DNA from: Auanema rhodensis
Taxonomy: Eukaryota > Animalia > Nematoda
Assembly: GCA_964057225.1 (NCBI GenBank)
Contig: OZ059894.1
Span: 16,120,001 to 16,184,000, forward strand
DNA: 64,000 nt
Direction: 5' to 3'
In this document: piece by piece, positions 2,925-14,372 of the stretch
Layout: every line of letters begins with the position of its first letter
Numbering within the stretch: the stretch's first letter is position 1
The notes under the pieces: model-generated
Told to the model about the DNA's origin: nothing
The model's database searches: none
The model's input: the letters and a program-made list of their open reading frames with translations, nothing else
Position numbers and translations under genes: made by a program

Positions 2925-5900
2925 ATGGGAAACGAACAATCCTTTAATTCTGTTGATACTATGAAAACTGGAAGCCGACGAAGTCTGGATGCTACTCTAC
3001 TACGACAAGTAAGAGATTTTCCTAATTTTAATAAATCACTTGTGACGTTTAAACAATGATGTCATAGTTTTTTAGTTAGTTTACTGGTTTATTTATAAAC
3101 ATGCGTATATACATGTATGTGTAAATATTAGATAAATTCGAATACATTTAAAAGTAAAAATAAGAAAAATCAAAAATAGTAATCAGATAATTCGTTTTGT
3201 TAACCTGTTCCTCTTATTTTTGAGCACAGAGCACAAAGTAGTGTGGCGTATCTGATGTTATATTTCAAGAAATGAGACACTTCGGCGTGTTTACTAGTTT
3301 TCTTTGCAATTTTTTTTTAAAAAATATTAAGTTAATTCCAAATAAATTCAAAAAATTTAAACAATTGTCTAGTTTTTTTTAATAGTTTTTGATCTTTGCA
3401 TTTATTCATCAACCCTTGTCATCAGCATTTCGAAGTCAAAGTTCTCTTTGGAACGTGGGGTTCGTTGTCCTCAGACATCCTTTCCTCGGTCTCTTTTTGA
3501 TAATTGGCTCATAAGAAGGACTAGGAAAGTTCGAAAAAGGAAGGACAAGATCTAGTAACAATCGGGGATTAAACAGAGTTGGAAGAACAAAGTTGCTGTC
3601 AGCGGAAGAAGAAGCTTCAGAAGCTTTTAAACGCGTCCGCCTCATCATCATAGGCTTGAATAAGTGTACGTGCTCAACTTCTGACTCTGACCTATCATTC
3701 TAACTCTAATACGAAATTTAAATTTTATTTTTGAATTTATGACTTGATTGTTTTCTATCGCGAAGTTAACTTTTGGGTTCTAATATAAAGAATCAAAAAT
3801 AATAAAGACTTTGAAGATATTTTAACATAAAAGTTTAAAAGATTTCCCTGCTTATCCAAACAAACAATGTTTTTTAACATTAAATTTTTTCAAGCATAAA
3901 GCTAATTTCTATTGAAATATTACATCATTTTTCGAACATTTTCTCAATAAGCTTTAAAGAATTATTCAGCTTCATTGACTTTTTAAGAATAAAAAAAGGT
4001 TATTTATCAAAAAAAATCATAACTATGCCATATAAGATTCAGAAAATAAATCTTAATGTTCATAGCACATTGGGGTACTTCATATCGTTCATCATATTGT
4101 TCATTGGGACACAAATACCAACAACACTTCCTTTGATTTTTGCTATTTCTTCAAAATGTATTTTATATAATATATTCGAAAATATGACATGAATATATAT
4201 TATATTTAGTTAAAAGATAGTCCTATTTCTGGAAACAAAGTGATAATATTGATAGTAAGTACTCATAAGGGAGTAGAAGAATGTGAATGTAAAAATCTTC
4301 ATGTATGTCAACAGAATGATGAAAAGGGGACGATTTATTTTATAGCTAAATTACATAGCTTCATCTGTTGGCATTTATTTATGATTCACCATAGAAGAAA
4401 GGAGAAATAAAAAAAAGAAAAGAGAATAAGAGAAGGCGAGAGAGTAAGATGGAAAGAGAACGATAGGAGAAAGCTCCTCTTGTCGTTGTCTTCGTTGTCG
4501 TCCTATCTTCGTTATCCTCATGATGCTCTAAGATCCAACTCAGTTCTTCTATTTTCTTTTAGCTGTGCTCATTTTTCTTGCCAATAACTTCATAAAATTT
4601 TTTTAGTTTGCTTGTATAAGGATTACATTACAAATTAATTTCATGAATTTTGCAAGATTTACAGGCTTATTTTCCTTCTAGCTGTTTTTTTTGCTAATCA
4701 AGTGCAATTCCGTCCTATGCTTCACCTATTTTAGAAGGTGTTTCATGCATGGAAATATGGCTGACAGGAAGAAAATTAAGGAACAAGTGCATAACTGTGT
4801 TATTCTCTTACAAATCATCTAGAATAGTAATTATGCAATTCTAACCTATACTTTAAAAGAATGTCAAGTTTTGGAAGCTTGAGAAGAGGGTAAAATGATT
4901 CCAGTTATGTTTGTCTATTTTCGTAGATTTGTCATGGGTCAACACACTCAACTACATTTTTACAAAAATATTACATCATATTTAATTTTTTTAAGGGGAA
5001 TTCTTGTGCGGTTTTGCGAAAAAAATAGTTGTTTTGAATTTTTACGTGAAGTCCACGTGTATTATGCAGCCTATTTCATCTTTTATAATGTTGAGAGCGG
5101 TTGTTTGTTCGTTTTTCTATAATTTTCTATATAAACTAGTTATCAACGTCTTCAATATTTTGATCTTAAGCCTTTTCCGTTTAGTGATTCTTTGGCCATT
5201 TGGTATAGTCACATCTTTCTCCAAAATGCTGATACTATGACAAAAGGGTGTGGTAGTAAATTTGACGAGAGTAACGATTTAATCTGGTAATGGCGTCAGA
5301 TTTCCAAAGTAACACTTTTAAATCTTTTCGAAGCTCACCAATACTGAAATCTAACTCTCAGTTGAAATTGTCATACTTTTTACTGACTCATTCTATATAA
5401 GAATCAACCATCAAAGTTTTTGTTACCAAAAATCAAGTATTTCCTCACATTATCTAAATTGAAACTTGTATGGAAAGCTGAAACCCGAAGAAGAAAGTTC
5501 TTTTTTTTTTTCAAATTTTCACCAGCCTATTTGAACATCTTTTCGACCCCATTGCTATCCCCTCCCCGTCTCCGTGACATTCGAACTTTGGGAGGGGAAC
5601 TCATTCTGTTTTCTTTCTGGCTCTTACCTCATTTCAGTTTGTTTTTTTTTTGTGAATAATAGAGAAAAAGAGACTAAAAAGAACAAAATATGTTCCGCAT
5701 CATACCTGACGAGCCTGTTTTCTCGATATATTGCAGAATTCACATGTCGCTTATTGGTCTTTTGCGAGCATATTTTATTTATATTTCTATGCATTCCTTT
5801 CCTTGTAACAAACTAAAATATTATCTAAGCTATTCACCTACAGTTTCTTATCTTCTACATTTTTGAGTTTTTATAAATATTTTTCATCATTATGAGGGCT

Positions 5901-8236: not shown

Positions 8237-8782
8237 TCGGAATTTTATATGACAGATCTTCTATGAGAGTAGCTAAACGATTTTTTTCTCAAAAAGAAAG
8301 AAATATCTTTAATTGGGTATAAGCACATTTCCATTCCAATCAGATCTCGCATTCATTTTTTTGTACAAAAACCCGTGAATAATTTCATTTATACTCCTTA
8401 ACATTTGAATATAATTTAAGAAAAAAAAAACAAAAAAACTTTTGTCAAGATAAAATTAGAAAAAAGCCTCCAGTTCTATAAGGGTATTTAAACTCTGAAG
8501 ATATTTCAATTTAAAAATTGATGTTTCTGTTTGTATTATAAGATTTTGAATGTTTGTTATTTCCAGATTACAAAACAAAAATTAAAACTTTAAAAAAAAA
8601 GAAAAGAAAGAATATAATACTGTCATTTTTAATAAAGTCTTTGAGTTTTATACAACTTTGTTTTTGTTAATAGAAATATATAATACAATATATAGAATAA
8701 GGTACAAAATTGTCTAATTTCTAATATTAATTCATATTGAAAATAAGTTTTTCTCTTATTTATATCTTAGATCAAGATAAAT

Positions 8783-9977
8783 CTAACGTTTTTTCATACA
8801 AATTGACGAACTTGTAAACAAATTTCTGAATTATTAATTGCGAATGTGTAGCTGTTGGACGCTATATGTTTTAACTCAGCTTGATTAGATAAAAATTGTA
8901 AAAGAACGTCTTCTCTTCCATATATTCTGTCAAAAAGAATTGAACAACGATTTGAAAACTTGGCATTCTGTAAAAAAAATTAAAAAACTGATTCAATATG
9001 ACATCACATATTTAATCTGATCATTCAATCTTTAGAAATAACTATGTTGACTACTATATGAAATATGAAACTCACTCTGAAAAAATCCAAAACTTTATTG
9101 ATTGTGATCATTGTTACAGTAGCATCAGCCCAAAATGATTTTAAACCAAAATTACATTTATTAGAACGATCTATAAGGATTTCTAATGCTTCATCATCAC
9201 ATAATATTGTTCGTTGACTGATCAACCTAAAACGATAAATAGTATTAGATAAAAGACAATAAACACAGAAAAAAAAAAGATAAAATCTAAAGAAATAAAG
9301 TGAAAATAAAAATATTTTGTATGACAATAACTAACTTTAACGCATGAATTGCTCTCATAGAGCTTACTATATCAACGACATTATCAAAAGTGAAACAAGG
9401 ATCAATTGAAAGTTCAGTACAATATGGTAGTCTTTGCATAAATGCATATGCATCTATATCACAATGAGATTCGAAAATTCCTAACTGAAATGTAAAGAAA
9501 CATTCAATAGTAATTCATGAAATTGCATACTTTTTCTATATTTCTAAGCCACCAATCTGGTAATGAACTGAGAGTATCTCTCATGAAATTTGTTCGAGCT
9601 CTTACAATAAATTCCAATGGTTTTAATGACCAAATATAATGAAAAAGATCTTCATAAGAAGTTGCACACGTAAATGACTGAAAAAATGGATGCGAATAAA
9701 ATTTAAAAAATCAATATTACCTGGTTAAAATTGTTTTTTATTATCAGTACGATTATAGAATTGCCTTCAGTTTCAGTTAAATCAATAGTCTCTACCTGTT
9801 CTCGTCTGTTTAGAAAAAAAATTGGTTTTTAATCAATGAAGATGTAACTCACTTTATTTTTTTATTTTTTCGTACAATTTTATAAAATCTTTTACTAGTA
9901 GTTGCTACTTTCCTGAGGCAGGGGGCTTCCAAATATCCAAATACTTTGGTTAGAATTTCATCTGGTAACCTCATCAT
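8783..9977 (-). CDS. F-box protein, multi-exon
   Basis: N-terminus MMRLPDEILTKVFGYLEAPCLRKVATTSKRFYKIV fits the F-box consensus (LPxEIL..IF.YL...L......KRF); GT-AG exons lead to stop at 8783. Confidence 0.8.
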
Positions 9978-11620
9978 TCTCCCAAGTTGGAAGCCTAAAA
10001 ATCTGAAATATAATTTTTCAGGAAAACTGAGAAAAGTGCAAAAAGAAAAGTGAATGTAATATGATTTCTTCTAATTCAAATATGGAAGGTACAGCAATTA
10101 ATAAACTAGTTCGATAGTTGTGAATATGACCTCTCTTATTGGGCAGTGGGATGACCTAGTATAGTAAGATGTGACCTTCCTATTTCGTACCACCTACCTT
10201 TTCTCTGAAATATTGTCATTTTGCTCAAGGATTTGCTCAAAGACAACATTTGTCAACAAACCAGCAGATTTCTGCTTCCTCGACGAGGTGGATGAGTTTT
10301 CCGAACAAGGAGCATATAAGTGCTGCGTAGTTAAATACTTCTTCAATATTTCCAATTATCATTTTTTCAATGTTTTGTTCTTCATAACCTTCAAACGACC
10401 TCTAAAAGAAGGGTGGACCTAAACTCAAAGAAAATAAGTAATGTATGCATTTCTCTTTAGAATTGCATACCGCAAATACTCTTAAATTTACTTGTTTTGT
10501 AGTTTTCTTGTCTTTCTAAGTTTGTAATCAATGTTTTTATGGACAACTTATATTCCAAAATGATAGCTGTCATGAGAATTTTTTTTTACTCTTCAAAAAA
10601 AATGAAATTTTTTAGGTCTTATCTCATACATGCATTATCGAATGAATATTGTTCACATCTACTTCAGTATGTTTACTCTGACTATACGCTTTTGAAACTA
10701 TTTTTATTTTAACGTAGAATTTCTCTGAATTTTACACCATCTAGAAACTGTATCATATTCCAAATTCATTCACATAGTCCGTTATCGTAATGCTTGATTG
10801 CATCAACCATTCTACACCTTGTATTCTCGCAGAGATTTTCCTGGGGTTATGGTAGCTCATTACGCAATTTTTGTAGCGGAAGGTAGGAAAGCTTACATTT
10901 TCTCTTTCGATCTCTTTGTCTGTTCCAATTAAATTTTTATATTCAATCTTATTTTTGTTTTTGTTTGTTTTTGTTTTTATTATGTATTTTATGTATGGAT
11001 ATGTTTTGTCACGTATCTAATTAGAATTGCGTGGAATGCTACGTTAAACATCACATGACTTCGTATGTCAATCACTGTGTATACATGTAGAAACAATATA
11101 CGGTTGTAATCAGTTTTAACTTGAAACTTTTAGAATGCTAATTTTTTTTCTATCCTTTTATCTTCTATTTTCTAGTCTTTGTTATTTTATAAGTTTTCTC
11201 ATATGTCGTTTTTCACATGTTGTTTTCCCAAATTTCATTGTTTTTATTATTCGAATAAATTAATCATTTGAGTTAATTGTTTTAACTTAACTTAATCTCA
11301 ACTCTTCAATATCTTCATAGTTCTATATTTACGATTTTTCTGGATATTTAAAAAAATTTTTTTTCGTAATTACACTCTTTTCGGTTAATATTTGTACATT
11401 AAATGTCTTTATTTTTTTTAATCTGATTTTTTGCAGTTTCGTGTTTTGCTGATCTTTAAGTGATCTTCTTTTACTGATGAAATTACTGCGAAATGGGTCC
11501 TGGTGCGACAGGCATGAATTTCGCAACACCGTAAAGTGGGCGGATTATTTGCTCTGCAAAGGACCGTCAGTCCTATTTTCAGCTTAACGGCCAGTGTATC
11601 TTATTAGAAGTTTCAGCGAT

Positions 11621-11638
11621 ATGATCGCTGGATTCTAA
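11621..11638 (+). promoter_or_regulatory. uORF1 (MIAGF*) in atfs-1 leader
   Basis: ATG ATC GCT GGA TTC TAA, 4 nt after the TTTCAG acceptor ending at 11616. Confidence 0.7.
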
Positions 11639-11733
11639 GATAGAAAACTTTCTATTGTTATTTGAACGATTCAAGGTAATTTGCTGTTTTTACCCTCTTA
11701 GCATTTCTATAATTTGATTATGATTTGCAGAAG

Positions 11734-11865
11734 ATGTCGCCCTTACGAAGCTCTGAGAGTGCGGAATCTCGAAATGTTGTCCAGAATTACCAGAATTACT
11801 ACGTCCATGGGACCACAAGTCCTAGGAGGGTGTTCCCTGTTAAGGGACGCCCAAACCGCTCCTAA
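11734..11865 (+). promoter_or_regulatory. uORF2 (43 aa), out of frame, overlapping the atfs-1 start
   Basis: ATG 11734 to TAA 11865; the main ATG at 11774 is 40 nt downstream in a different frame. Confidence 0.7.
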
Positions 11866-13151
11866 GGTTGCCCCAACCTATAATATAGAGCAGCATATCT
11901 TGCATGATCATGCTGCCTATTGTAAAATATCTCTTCCACCACGACAGAGAAAGTAAAAATACATTGATTAATTTGTCTTTAATTCATAGTTTTGCAGCTC
12001 CAGTTCAAGCTGTGATCCGTTTCTTGGAATTGGTCCTGGTGGTAGTGAATCAATGAATGATCTCGTTGACTTGGAACTTTCTTCCAAAACTCCTTGCCGA
12101 TCTCGTGTTGCAAGTACATCCAGTAAGAACTCATATATTTCTTATTATATTATATTTTTTCTTGTGCAGACTCGACAATAGAAGATTTGTTTTCATCAGT
12201 TCGGTTTAAATCCGAGTGCGAAATTGAAAATGAGAGTGATGAAAGTTTTTTAGAAGGAGACAGAGTTTTCAATTTCTCGGTTAGTTCAGTTCTTATAAAA
12301 TCCACTATGATGAAAAACATGCTAATCATGAAAAGAGCGCCGTTTGCTCTTACCCCCGTGTTGTACAACTTGTTAACTGAGTGGAATTAACCTGTATTTT
12401 TAAAAAATTATCTTTTTTTGTTGATTATCAATTTTATCATTTTTAGAATCCACACGCCCAGTATTTTGTTTCGTTAACAGACTTAAATTTAAGTTCTGAT
12501 AATGATGAAAAATGTCGATGGGATGCTTGGGAATCACCATTTTCATCTGCAGCCAATGTTAAGATAGAAGAACCTGATGTAGACGAATGCTCTCCGAGTT
12601 CAAGTCCTAACCCCGAAGAAACACTAGCTGTAGTGCCAAACATAAAGCCGGAGCAAGTATGCATTAGTTCTGGTTTTTGTTTTTTAATTTTTCTGTTTAG
12701 TACGATGATTACGAAGTCAAACCAGAATGCAGTGTTCAATCTGAGAGCAATAGGTATAGTCCTGTTGATGGTTGGTATTATCAACCAGTTGTGAAAAAAC
12801 GTGGTGTTACTTTGAAGGTATATCTTTAATTTTTAAAAATTGCAATGGAAAAAAATTTAAGCCTCGTGTGGACGATGAAACTGAACGGCGCCGCGCCATG
12901 AATCGGGTTGCTGCTTTACGATATCGAGAAAGAAAAAGAAGGGACAAACACCAGTTAAAAATGTATGTTCTTTGTAGCTTATCAGCAACTTGCATTTTTC
13001 TCCATTTGCAAATTATTTGTTTTATCATTTCACCTTATCTGATTCCAGGCAGCTTCGTGAAATGGAATTAAGGAATAGAGACTTGAAACAGCAGGAAGTC
13101 CGGCTTTTAATTGAAATATCGACAATGAAGTCAAAATTGCACAATGCATAA
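11774..13151 (+). CDS. atfs-1: ATFS-1, mitochondrial-UPR bZIP transcription factor
   Basis: N-terminal MLSRITRITTSMGPQVLGGCSLLRD resembles the ATFS-1 targeting sequence; DPFLG and WDAW blocks; bZIP KKRGVTLKPRVDDETERRRAMNRVAALRYRERKR matches the remembered C. elegans ATFS-1 basic region; seven coding exons join in frame. Confidence 0.9.
12301..12385 (+). ncRNA. Intronic box C/D snoRNA, predicted U6 snRNA guide (mgU6-53/SNORD8-9-like)
   Basis: Terminal stem TCCAC/GTGGA, box C ATGATGA 12307-12313, box D CTGA 12377-12380; CATGCTAATC before a D'-like ATGA is complementary to U6 GAUUAGCAUG; lies in the longest atfs-1 intron. Confidence 0.85.
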
Positions 13152-13528
13152 AAATATATATTATTTTTTTATCTATGTTCGTAATTTCAATGTAATGAAT
13201 GTATCATTCTTTTTTTTCTTTTTTTTTGCAATCGGGGGGACAATGTGTGGGACGGGTTGGAAGAAAAATGAAACTGGTTCCAGAAATTATTTTAAATTCT
13301 GAATGACAGTCCTTCGCTGTATTCTGTGTAATAGAAGACCAAGATGAAGGATAAATCTTCATTTCTCGGGTGTTTTTTGTCTGGATTTTTATTTTAAAAT
13401 TTCGCTGGTCACCGCAGTCGCAAATTCGCGTCACATGTGCGCTTCATCGCTGATTCAGCTCCGACGTTCATCTTCCTAGCCTCTCGTATTCCCTTCAAAG
13501 GAATACTTACACATATTTTTTATTTAAT

Positions 13529-14372
13529 ATGAGTGATCGTTGTATTTTCTGTGGATGGAATCGTTCCAATTGTTATAAGGACATCAAATTTTTCGCTTTA
13601 CCGAAAGAGCCTGGTCTTAAACGTCTTTTGTGGATGCATGCTGTTCAAAAAAAAGTAAGCATTAATTAAATTAAGTCGATGTGTTTTGTTTTTAGGTTAT
13701 TAAAAGGCACGATAAAATTTGTAGTATTCATTTTCGACAAGGTAGACCTTCAAATGATCCTTCTCACGAAGATTTCATACCTCATTTGTTCTTGAATCCT
13801 GAAAAAACGTCCTCTGAGGTTTTTCGGTTTAAAAAAATTGAATTTTATCATTTAAATGTAGGTTCTTTCCTATTTGGAAAATGAGGATATGAATGATGCT
13901 CCTGCACCAAGAAAGTCGAATGAGAAACAGGGTAATATTGTGTTTCGATTAAATTTGCTTGTCATGTGCTCATTTTAATTGATGTTGATAGGCCCCAATA
14001 ACATCAATTTTCAGATACTAGTCCACCAGAAAACGATGATACTTCCGCCAATAATAAAAAACCAAATATTTTGAGAGGCAAGAGGGTAAAAAGATTATTT
14101 TTTTGTTTATTGTTTTATTATTTTTGTAATAGAAGTGCACAACAGTGATAACTGCGAGAATACTTGAACCGGTACAGTTTTTTGTTCACAAACTTTAATA
14201 TTTTCTGTTTTTAGCGTTTAGAAGCTGGTGTCAAAAAAGTTTGTGTGGTAAAAAAGCATGTAATGCTCTCAACATTTTCTAGTCCTAATTTAATTATTGC
14301 TAAGGATTCTAGAAATCAAAGTAAGTTCATTTGTACCTAAACAGCATGATGTTTTTATTCTCAGAGCTATAG
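13529..14372 (+). CDS. THAP zinc-finger protein
   Basis: MSDRCIFCGW...FFALPKEP...LWMHAV...ICSIHF...FIPHLF shows the C2CH THAP signature with conserved P, W, F and P. Confidence 0.85.

Follow-up and report, generated by a model that had tools for sequence, protein, structure and literature searches.

We analysed a window of 64,000 nucleotides (nt) from the free-living nematode Auanema rhodensis (GenBank assembly GCA_964057225.1, contig OZ059894.1, positions 16,120,001 to 16,184,000 of the forward strand), all A. rhodensis coordinates below being positions within this window. The subject is a plus-strand gene encoding a bZIP-domain transcription factor and, in particular, the leader of its mRNA, in which a series of upstream open reading frames (uORFs) ends with one, uORF2, that runs across the main start codon in another frame. 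An original prediction, made from the sequence, had described this arrangement as an ATF4/ATF5-type switch of two uORFs on the gene atfs-1, through which the integrated stress response (ISR) might gate the unfolded protein response of mitochondria (UPRmt).

Transcript and leader of the A. rhodensis bZIP gene

Transcript evidence was obtained for A. rhodensis only, from four public RNA runs of a single study, in which about half of the words in 11300-13300 were present. Contigs of these runs were aligned to positions 8300-14200 (5,901 letters). The contigs skip seven GT..AG introns of the bZIP gene in the four runs, and therefore represent spliced RNA; as contigs, they are blind to minor isoforms, transcript ends and expression levels. 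Their starts range from 11435 to 11483. In two runs the loose letters CAAGTTTG stand ahead of the contigs and adjoin the genomic AG at 11435-11436. Read with this AG, CAAGTTTG matches the 3' end of SL1, the spliced leader of nematodes. The mRNA is SL1-trans-spliced at 11436/11437, from which it follows that the mature leader comprises 282 nt (11437-11675 plus 11731-11773). This is long for an SL1 mRNA. The TTTCAG at 11611-11616, which had been proposed as the acceptor of the leader, does not play this role in the contigs, which run through it, the SL1 site lying 180 nt further upstream. Nor do the contigs give any sign of the trans-splicing at 11730 that had been suggested as a way of removing uORF1, although trans-splicing at 11616 or 11730 is possible as a minor form.

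The core of the predicted anatomy was confirmed, i.e., the coordinates of uORF1, of the intron at 11676-11730, of uORF2 and of the main ATG, as well as the two 40-nt spacings and the 92-nt overlap, and both of these uORFs are present in the mature mRNA, as seen in spliced contigs of all four runs. Once the intron has been removed, the uORF2 ATG follows the stop of uORF1 at a distance of 40 nt (37 + 3) and is itself followed, 40 nt on, by the main ATG (11774). uORF2 then runs out of frame through the first 92 nt of the coding sequence (CDS) to a TAA that sits within the GCT CCT AAG (A-P-K) codons of the main frame. The AUGs that follow uORF2 termination, about 90 nt beyond the main AUG, are out of frame.

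The mature leader nevertheless holds five upstream ATGs (uATGs; 11477, 11493, 11514, 11621 and 11734), which form four uORFs rather than the two originally described (Table 1). What stands of the ATF4/ATF5-type layout is the succession, within the mRNA, of a short uORF and an out-of-frame overlapping one; the count of exactly two does not, and a clean switch of two uORFs is thus not what the leader presents. When the leader was shuffled with its dinucleotides preserved, 5.2 +/- 1.8 uATGs were expected, as against five observed, and an out-of-frame overlapping uORF arose in 40% of the shuffles. Since the layout in one sequence is what chance would give, weight can come only from comparison across species. 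What is unusual is that the leader is long, contains an intron and has been conserved across species.

Conservation of uORF2 and of the upstream leader

The uORF2 comparison covered eight loci, i.e., that of A. rhodensis and seven fetched orthologous loci from Auanema sp. JU1783, Cylicocyclus, Ancylostoma duodenale, Teladorsagia, Cooperia, Trichostrongylus and Heligmosomoides, making two Auanema-type genomes and six strongylids in total. Haemonchus, Nippostrongylus, Necator and A. ceylanicum stand outside this set, no contig having been found for their proteins. At all eight loci, the uORF2 ATG is placed 3 nt past a splice acceptor (AG/ARRATG, with the slash at the splice) and has an A at -3. 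It precedes the main ATG by 40 nt in the two Auanema-type genomes and Heligmosomoides and by 43 nt in the others; both distances equal 1 modulo 3, so that the main open reading frame (ORF) is in the +1 frame relative to uORF2 in all eight. The length of uORF2 is 43 codons, or 42 in Heligmosomoides, and its overlap with the main CDS is 89-92 nt. In every case the T of the uORF2 TAA is the last base of a main-frame codon and its two A's open the Lys codon of A-P-K (xxT AAR), and this TAA is still kept in Heligmosomoides, where A-P-K is changed to P-S-K. The last sense codon and stop read UCC UAA at seven loci and UUC UAA at the eighth, with T at two synonymous sites throughout. When synonymous codons were randomised, an open frame with a stop at the same codon was retained with a probability of 0.08-0.12 per species. 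The introns and flanks of these lineages have lost all alignment.

The uORF2-specific N-terminal peptide differs between lineages at the eight loci, and synonymous changes in the overlap of uORF2 with the CDS are not suppressed. For these reasons, what has been conserved appears to be the passage of translating ribosomes over the main start codon and not the peptide. A functional peptide encoded by uORF2 was considered and ruled out, its uORF2-specific part not being conserved. The comparison of leaders across relatives, which had been put forward as a check on the prediction, thus bore out uORF2 in eight of eight clade V species, whereas uORF1 was recovered in JU1783 and not in the strongylids.

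Within the two Auanema-type genomes, conservation extends to a block of the leader upstream of the intron. Alignment of A. rhodensis with JU1783 gave 40-47% identity for the leader intron and flanks and 79-82% for CDS exon 1; over 11493-11640, 88% of the columns are identical, and 11583-11637 is identical throughout. Counterparts in JU1783 exist for three of the four A. rhodensis uORFs, namely the uORF ending in MNFATP, uORF1 and uORF2. The JU1783 uORF in the MNFATP frame has 27 codons and its own upstream ATG, with the same MNFATP end and stop, while JU1783 lacks the ATGs found at 11477 and 11493. The spacing from uORF1 to uORF2 in JU1783 is predicted to be 35 nt. Conservation of uORF1 and MNFATP is confined to these two genomes.

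All of uORF1 falls in the 3' arm of a hairpin, apart from its AUG, which makes up the loop. This hairpin has a predicted free energy of -14.5 kcal/mol (z -3.95), a value matched by one of 200 shuffles. The remaining ~110 nt of the block (11493-11604; locus L001 of JU1783, 3731-3846) fold no better than shuffles (z -0.7 and +0.75). This conserved stretch 5' of the hairpin could serve to promote re-initiation, to bind a protein or, at the DNA level, as an enhancer. For the block as a whole, a multi-branch fold was also tried, in which the two-sequence alignment offered two seemingly compensatory pairs; it was rejected as no better than shuffles, which leaves the uORF1 hairpin as the one structure upheld.

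Upstream DNA of the strongylid loci has features of its own. Three trichostrongylid loci (L004 2850-2900, L005 2850-2900 and L006 1710-1760) share a conserved block with CTTATCA and CTATCTCC; CTTATCA is a GATA-factor site on the opposite strand and lies ~70-110 nt upstream of the uORF2 acceptor. This block may be a proximal promoter. The Cylicocyclus record (L002 1340-3995) contains a separate same-strand 'gene' of 73 amino acids (aa) whose TAG stands 5 nt before the bZIP main ATG. This model probably represents mis-called leader exons, in which case Cylicocyclus would have a long cis-spliced leader.

Identity and structure of the gene

Pfam bZIP_2 was matched, at its cut-off, by the basic-region exon that begins at 12862, and PF07716 was found on orthologues. 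The sole PDB match of the bZIP was human ATF4 (1CI6), and the closest feature clusters were those of arthropod ATF4-like 'activating transcription factor of chaperone' proteins. To judge from these matches, the protein carries a C-terminal bZIP of ATF4/ATF5 type. An exhaustive search with exon 4 led to a 301-aa protein of Auanema sp. JU1783 (P0002) with 67.6% identity over the full length, and this orthologue was then used as the query for homologue searches. In profile searches, orthologues were confined to clade V, with representatives in Heterorhabditis, Cylicocyclus, Ancylostoma, Necator, Oesophagostomum, Teladorsagia, Haemonchus, Cooperia, Nippostrongylus, Trichostrongylus and Heligmosomoides. 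Common to all orthologues are an N-terminus of the form M-L-S-R-x-[ST]-R ... G-C-[ST]-x-L ... P-T-A-P-K, a W-x-x-W motif and the basic region R-R-x-x-N-R-x-A-A-x-R-Y-R-E-R-K-R.

By a simple composition count, the first 24 residues include three R/K, no D/E, six S/T and nine hydrophobic residues. An amphipathic 11-mer at the N-terminus has a hydrophobic moment (muH) of 0.63, and the N-terminus is kept across clade V. It looks like a mitochondrial presequence and is a candidate targeting sequence. An atf-4 orthologue lacking a presequence was judged a less likely identity for the gene, given that the conserved N-terminus is presequence-like. The original prediction had further envisaged that initiation at the Met at 11807 (Met-12) would yield an isoform truncated in its mitochondrial targeting sequence; this codon is Val in Auanema sp. 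JU1783, so the proposed start is not conserved.

No Caenorhabditis relative was recovered by the homologue searches, including one with a non-bZIP profile at E up to 10, and together the homologue and exhaustive representative searches yielded proteins of Auanema, Heterorhabditis and strongylids only. Because no Caenorhabditis protein was recovered, the name atfs-1 denotes a well-founded resemblance rather than a tested orthology to C. elegans ZC376.7. The earlier assignment to atfs-1 was upheld insofar as the bZIP is of ATF4 type and the N-terminus presequence-like, while the name itself remains one of likeness. The N-terminus and a D-W-x-A-W-N-H-Y-L motif resemble those of ATFS-1. An exact look-up of the genomic exon-1 ORF matched no record, and a metagenome scan produced 81 pattern matches, none of them a relative.

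Database models of several orthologues have wrong or short N-termini (P0006, P0012 and P0014). The H. polygyrus model is without the conserved first exon, which is present at L007 2793, and the models of A. ceylanicum, Nippostrongylus and one Haemonchus begin at a Met aligned to Met-8 of the full-length strongylid orthologues.

Table 1. Features of the bZIP gene and its leader (window coordinates)
Feature	Position	Strand	Evidence or remark
SL1 trans-splice acceptor (ttttttgcag)	11427..11436	+	in runs X2 and X3, contigs begin at 11435 with CAAGTTTG in front
Leader exon 1, 239 nt	11437..11675	+	unbroken contig cover, depth 160-220, joined to 11731
uORF-A, 36 codons	11477..11587	+	ATG absent in Auanema sp. 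JU1783
uORF-B, 13 codons	11493..11534	+	internal in-frame conserved ATG at 11514 (MNFATP)
Leader block conserved like coding sequence	11493..11640	+	JU1783 alignment
Hairpin around uORF1, 3-nt loop formed by the uORF1 AUG	11604..11638	+	sequence identical in JU1783
uORF1, 5 codons, MIAGF, stop TAA	11621..11638	+	in mature mRNA; identical in JU1783 (L001 3862-3879)
Leader intron, 55 nt, GT..AG	11676..11730	+	joint 11673>11729 (cut +2) in 4/4 runs
uORF2, 43 codons, stop 11863-11865	11734..11865	+	overlaps main start; kept in 8/8 species
Main CDS, 314 aa	11774..13151	+	7 coding exons; contig joints
Coding exons	11774-11952, 11998-12122, 12170-12279, 12447-12656, 12701-12817, 12862-12962, 13049-13151	+	contig joints
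CDS introns (six)	11953-11997, 12123-12169, 12280-12446, 12657-12700, 12818-12861, 12963-13048	+	spliced contigs

The adjoining upstream gene occupies 8714-10072 on the minus strand (CT..AC joints), and RNA coverage is absent over 10073-11254; the outron and promoter of the bZIP gene are therefore to be placed within ~1.3 kb. In three runs, what follows 13125 in the contigs is the last part of exon 6 linked to the first part of exon 7 (12963), which looks like a cycle in the assembly graph rather than a splice form and leaves the leader unaffected. A low-depth contig of run X1 (depth 4.5) at 12286-12457 spans most of the 167-nt intron 12280-12446 and could be a stable intronic RNA or a retained intron. 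Rfam gave no match in 10500-13500, which includes this intron, at E up to 1.

Possible modes of translational control

We consider it probable, at roughly 0.6, that uORF2 is a conserved translational brake acting by start-codon competition, and that the gene is the Auanema orthologue of an ATFS-1-like clade V bZIP of the ATF4/ATF5 family with a presequence-like N-terminus. The anatomy of the leader, its presence in the mature mRNA and its conservation are matters of direct observation. From them we infer that the uORFs are translated and that uORF2 is repressive, and any dependence on stress would be a further step of the same kind. A ribosome initiating at uORF2 could not produce the transcription factor, as it would end 92 nt past the main AUG in another frame; hence the proposal that uORF2 would serve as a brake through competition between the two start codons. 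In Auanema, the short uORFs further upstream would convert scanning ribosomes into re-initiating ones. With the uORF2 AUG 35-40 nt and the main AUG 80 nt past the uORF1 stop, some of these ribosomes would bypass uORF2 and use the main AUG, and output would be set by the speed at which they regain initiation competence, i.e., the ternary complex. Candidate inputs to this step would be eIF2alpha phosphorylation, TORC1 or none.

Control of ATF4-family bZIP proteins by uORFs is textbook knowledge. The A. rhodensis gene resembles mammalian ATF5 in its ATF4-type bZIP, presequence-like N-terminus, short uORF and last uORF overlapping the start out of frame, and in what would be a two-layer logic of translation followed by import. 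It differs in the length of uORF2 (43 codons versus 59 in ATF5), in a much tighter spacing (40 + 40 nt), in its two extra uORFs and in being expressed from an SL1-trans-spliced mRNA. Reviews describe ATF5 as coupling uORF control with a weak N-terminal mitochondrial targeting sequence (PMC5835775 among them). The order of short, permissive uORF(s) and an inhibitory last uORF is also that of ATF4 and yeast GCN4, and the conserved sequence and hairpin 5' of and around the short uORF recall the re-initiation-promoting elements 5' of GCN4 uORF1 (PMC3131280). The A. rhodensis leader departs from both systems in that its uORFs number four, vary in length and begin with one of 36 codons.

With regard to C. 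elegans ATFS-1 (ZC376.7), the A. rhodensis protein shares R4, which is mutated in et17 (R4H), a constitutively active allele, has T and not G at position 6, and is 314 aa long as compared with 472. Both are bZIP proteins with a presequence or presequence-like N-terminus, and synthesis of the C. elegans protein is translationally controlled through upstream sequence, although its regulation is reported to be ISR-independent (PMC9623136). Another C. elegans bZIP gene, zip-2, likewise has an upstream ORF overlapping the main start; its main ORF is in the +1 frame and is repressed when the animals are not stressed (PMC11831180). The overlapping ORF of zip-2 has 146 codons, an overlap given as both 121 bp and 121 codons, and a conserved peptide (PMC11831180), whereas that of A. 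rhodensis has 43 codons, an overlap of ~30 codons and a peptide that is not conserved. In the papers searched that contain both atfs-1 and uORF, the uORFs concerned were those of ATF4, ATF5, CHOP, zip-2 and tars-1, and none was attributed to atfs-1.

Several points weigh against our interpretation of uORF2 and its leader. The uORF layout, when considered in a single species, is not above chance. Two-thirds of uORF2 lies within a strongly conserved coding stretch, so part of its conservation must be inherited from the main frame. The first uORFs of the leader are the non-conserved one of 36 codons and that of 13 codons, which has a good start context, and re-initiation should be lowered by them as a consequence. 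The uORF1 AUG is located in a hairpin loop, and the 40/40-nt spacing is much tighter than that of ATF4. No counterpart of uORF1 or of the leader block was found in strongylid upstream DNA. The conserved GATA-type motif upstream of the acceptor in the trichostrongylids hints that this acceptor may receive the SL and that uORF2 may be the sole uORF of their leader. Induction of C. elegans ATFS-1 is, moreover, independent of gcn-2, pek-1 and RNA interference of eIF2alpha (PMC9623136; PMC5835775). ISR gating of the UPRmt through the leader, as originally envisaged, is a speculative possibility for A. rhodensis, with indirect evidence from C. elegans against it.

Some of these points would be accommodated if uORF2 were a constitutive damper, which, together with terminations in the leader acting via nonsense-mediated decay, held basal synthesis of a factor both costly and potent low while the main AUG was reached by leaky scanning at a fixed rate; regulation by stress would then come later, through mitochondrial import. 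In the strongylids uORF2 is the only detectable uORF, the upstream uORFs vary even between the two Auanema-type genomes, and the C. elegans UPRmt has no need for eIF2alpha kinases (PMC9623136; PMC5835775). An A at -3 of the uORF2 AUG in all eight species is, however, not a leaky context, and uORF1, the hairpin and the 150-nt block have been kept as strictly as the CDS, which exceeds what a passive damper needs. In C. elegans, furthermore, synthesis of ATFS-1 is translationally regulated and rises under mitochondrial stress, and a reporter made of the promoter and 5' untranslated region mirrors the protein (PMC9623136). On balance, we hold a purely constitutive role to be conceivable yet unlikely. 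Both ATFS-1 translation and this reporter require TORC1, v-ATPase and ribosomal proteins, and not gcn-2 or pek-1 (PMC9623136), as would be expected if the long leader, with its block and hairpin, demanded a high initiation and helicase capacity, the uORFs forming part of the barrier, and if synthesis tracked TORC1 activity and not eIF2alpha phosphorylation. The length of the leader and the conserved hairpin of -14.5 kcal/mol would suit such a TORC1/eIF4F-dependent mode. Outside the hairpin, the block nevertheless folds like shuffles, and there is no explanation in this account for why uORF2 has kept its start and stop so exactly, for which reasons we regard it as doubtful.

The +1 relation of the main ORF to uORF2, which is also the geometry of the overlapping and main ORFs of C. 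elegans zip-2 (PMC11831180), raises the further idea of a frameshift sensor of the zip-2 or antizyme kind, in which translational or mitochondrial stress would shift uORF2 ribosomes into the main frame, either within the overlap or at UCC UAA. Were this so, uORF2 would be a decision point, and the product, its presequence replaced by the uORF2 peptide, would be nuclear regardless of import, an outcome to which we attach little credence. The near-invariant UCC UAA, the T at two synonymous sites and the steady length of 42-43 codons would be in keeping with it. The same GCT CCT AAR, however, also codes for A-P-K, which does not vary in the main protein, the two frames overlap by a mere 89-92 nt and the uORF2-specific peptide is not conserved, which leaves frameshifting a slim prospect. 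If the uATGs were neutral by-products of an AT-rich leader, their number and the ease with which shuffles yield an overlapping uORF would be accounted for, as would the lack of conservation of the ATGs at 11477 and 11493. This would not account for the persistence of the start, frame, length and stop of uORF2 in eight species whose introns and flanks no longer align, given that the overlap part by itself has a probability of ~0.1 in each independent lineage, and a chance origin of uORF2 seems very unlikely.

According to reviews, mammals gate the mitochondrial stress response via uORF-controlled ATF4, CHOP and ATF5, whereas in nematodes the response depends on the import of ATFS-1 into mitochondria and can dispense with the ISR (PMC5835775 among them). 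What is new here is a start-overlapping uORF that has long been kept on an ATFS-1-like gene of both free-living and parasitic clade V nematodes. This suggests that an ATF5-like two-layer design, with translation and then import, may be ancestral and still present in worms, and that a translational brake of the mammalian ATF4/ATF5 type probably also acts on the worm gene. uORF2 thereby becomes a candidate cis-element for the translational control of C. elegans ATFS-1 that depends on upstream sequence (PMC9623136). Should Caenorhabditis be without the uORF, this would amount to a dated loss, and the ISR-independence of the UPRmt in C. elegans could be explained by it. The conserved uORF2 therefore bears on why the mitochondrial stress responses of worms and mammals appear to be differently wired.

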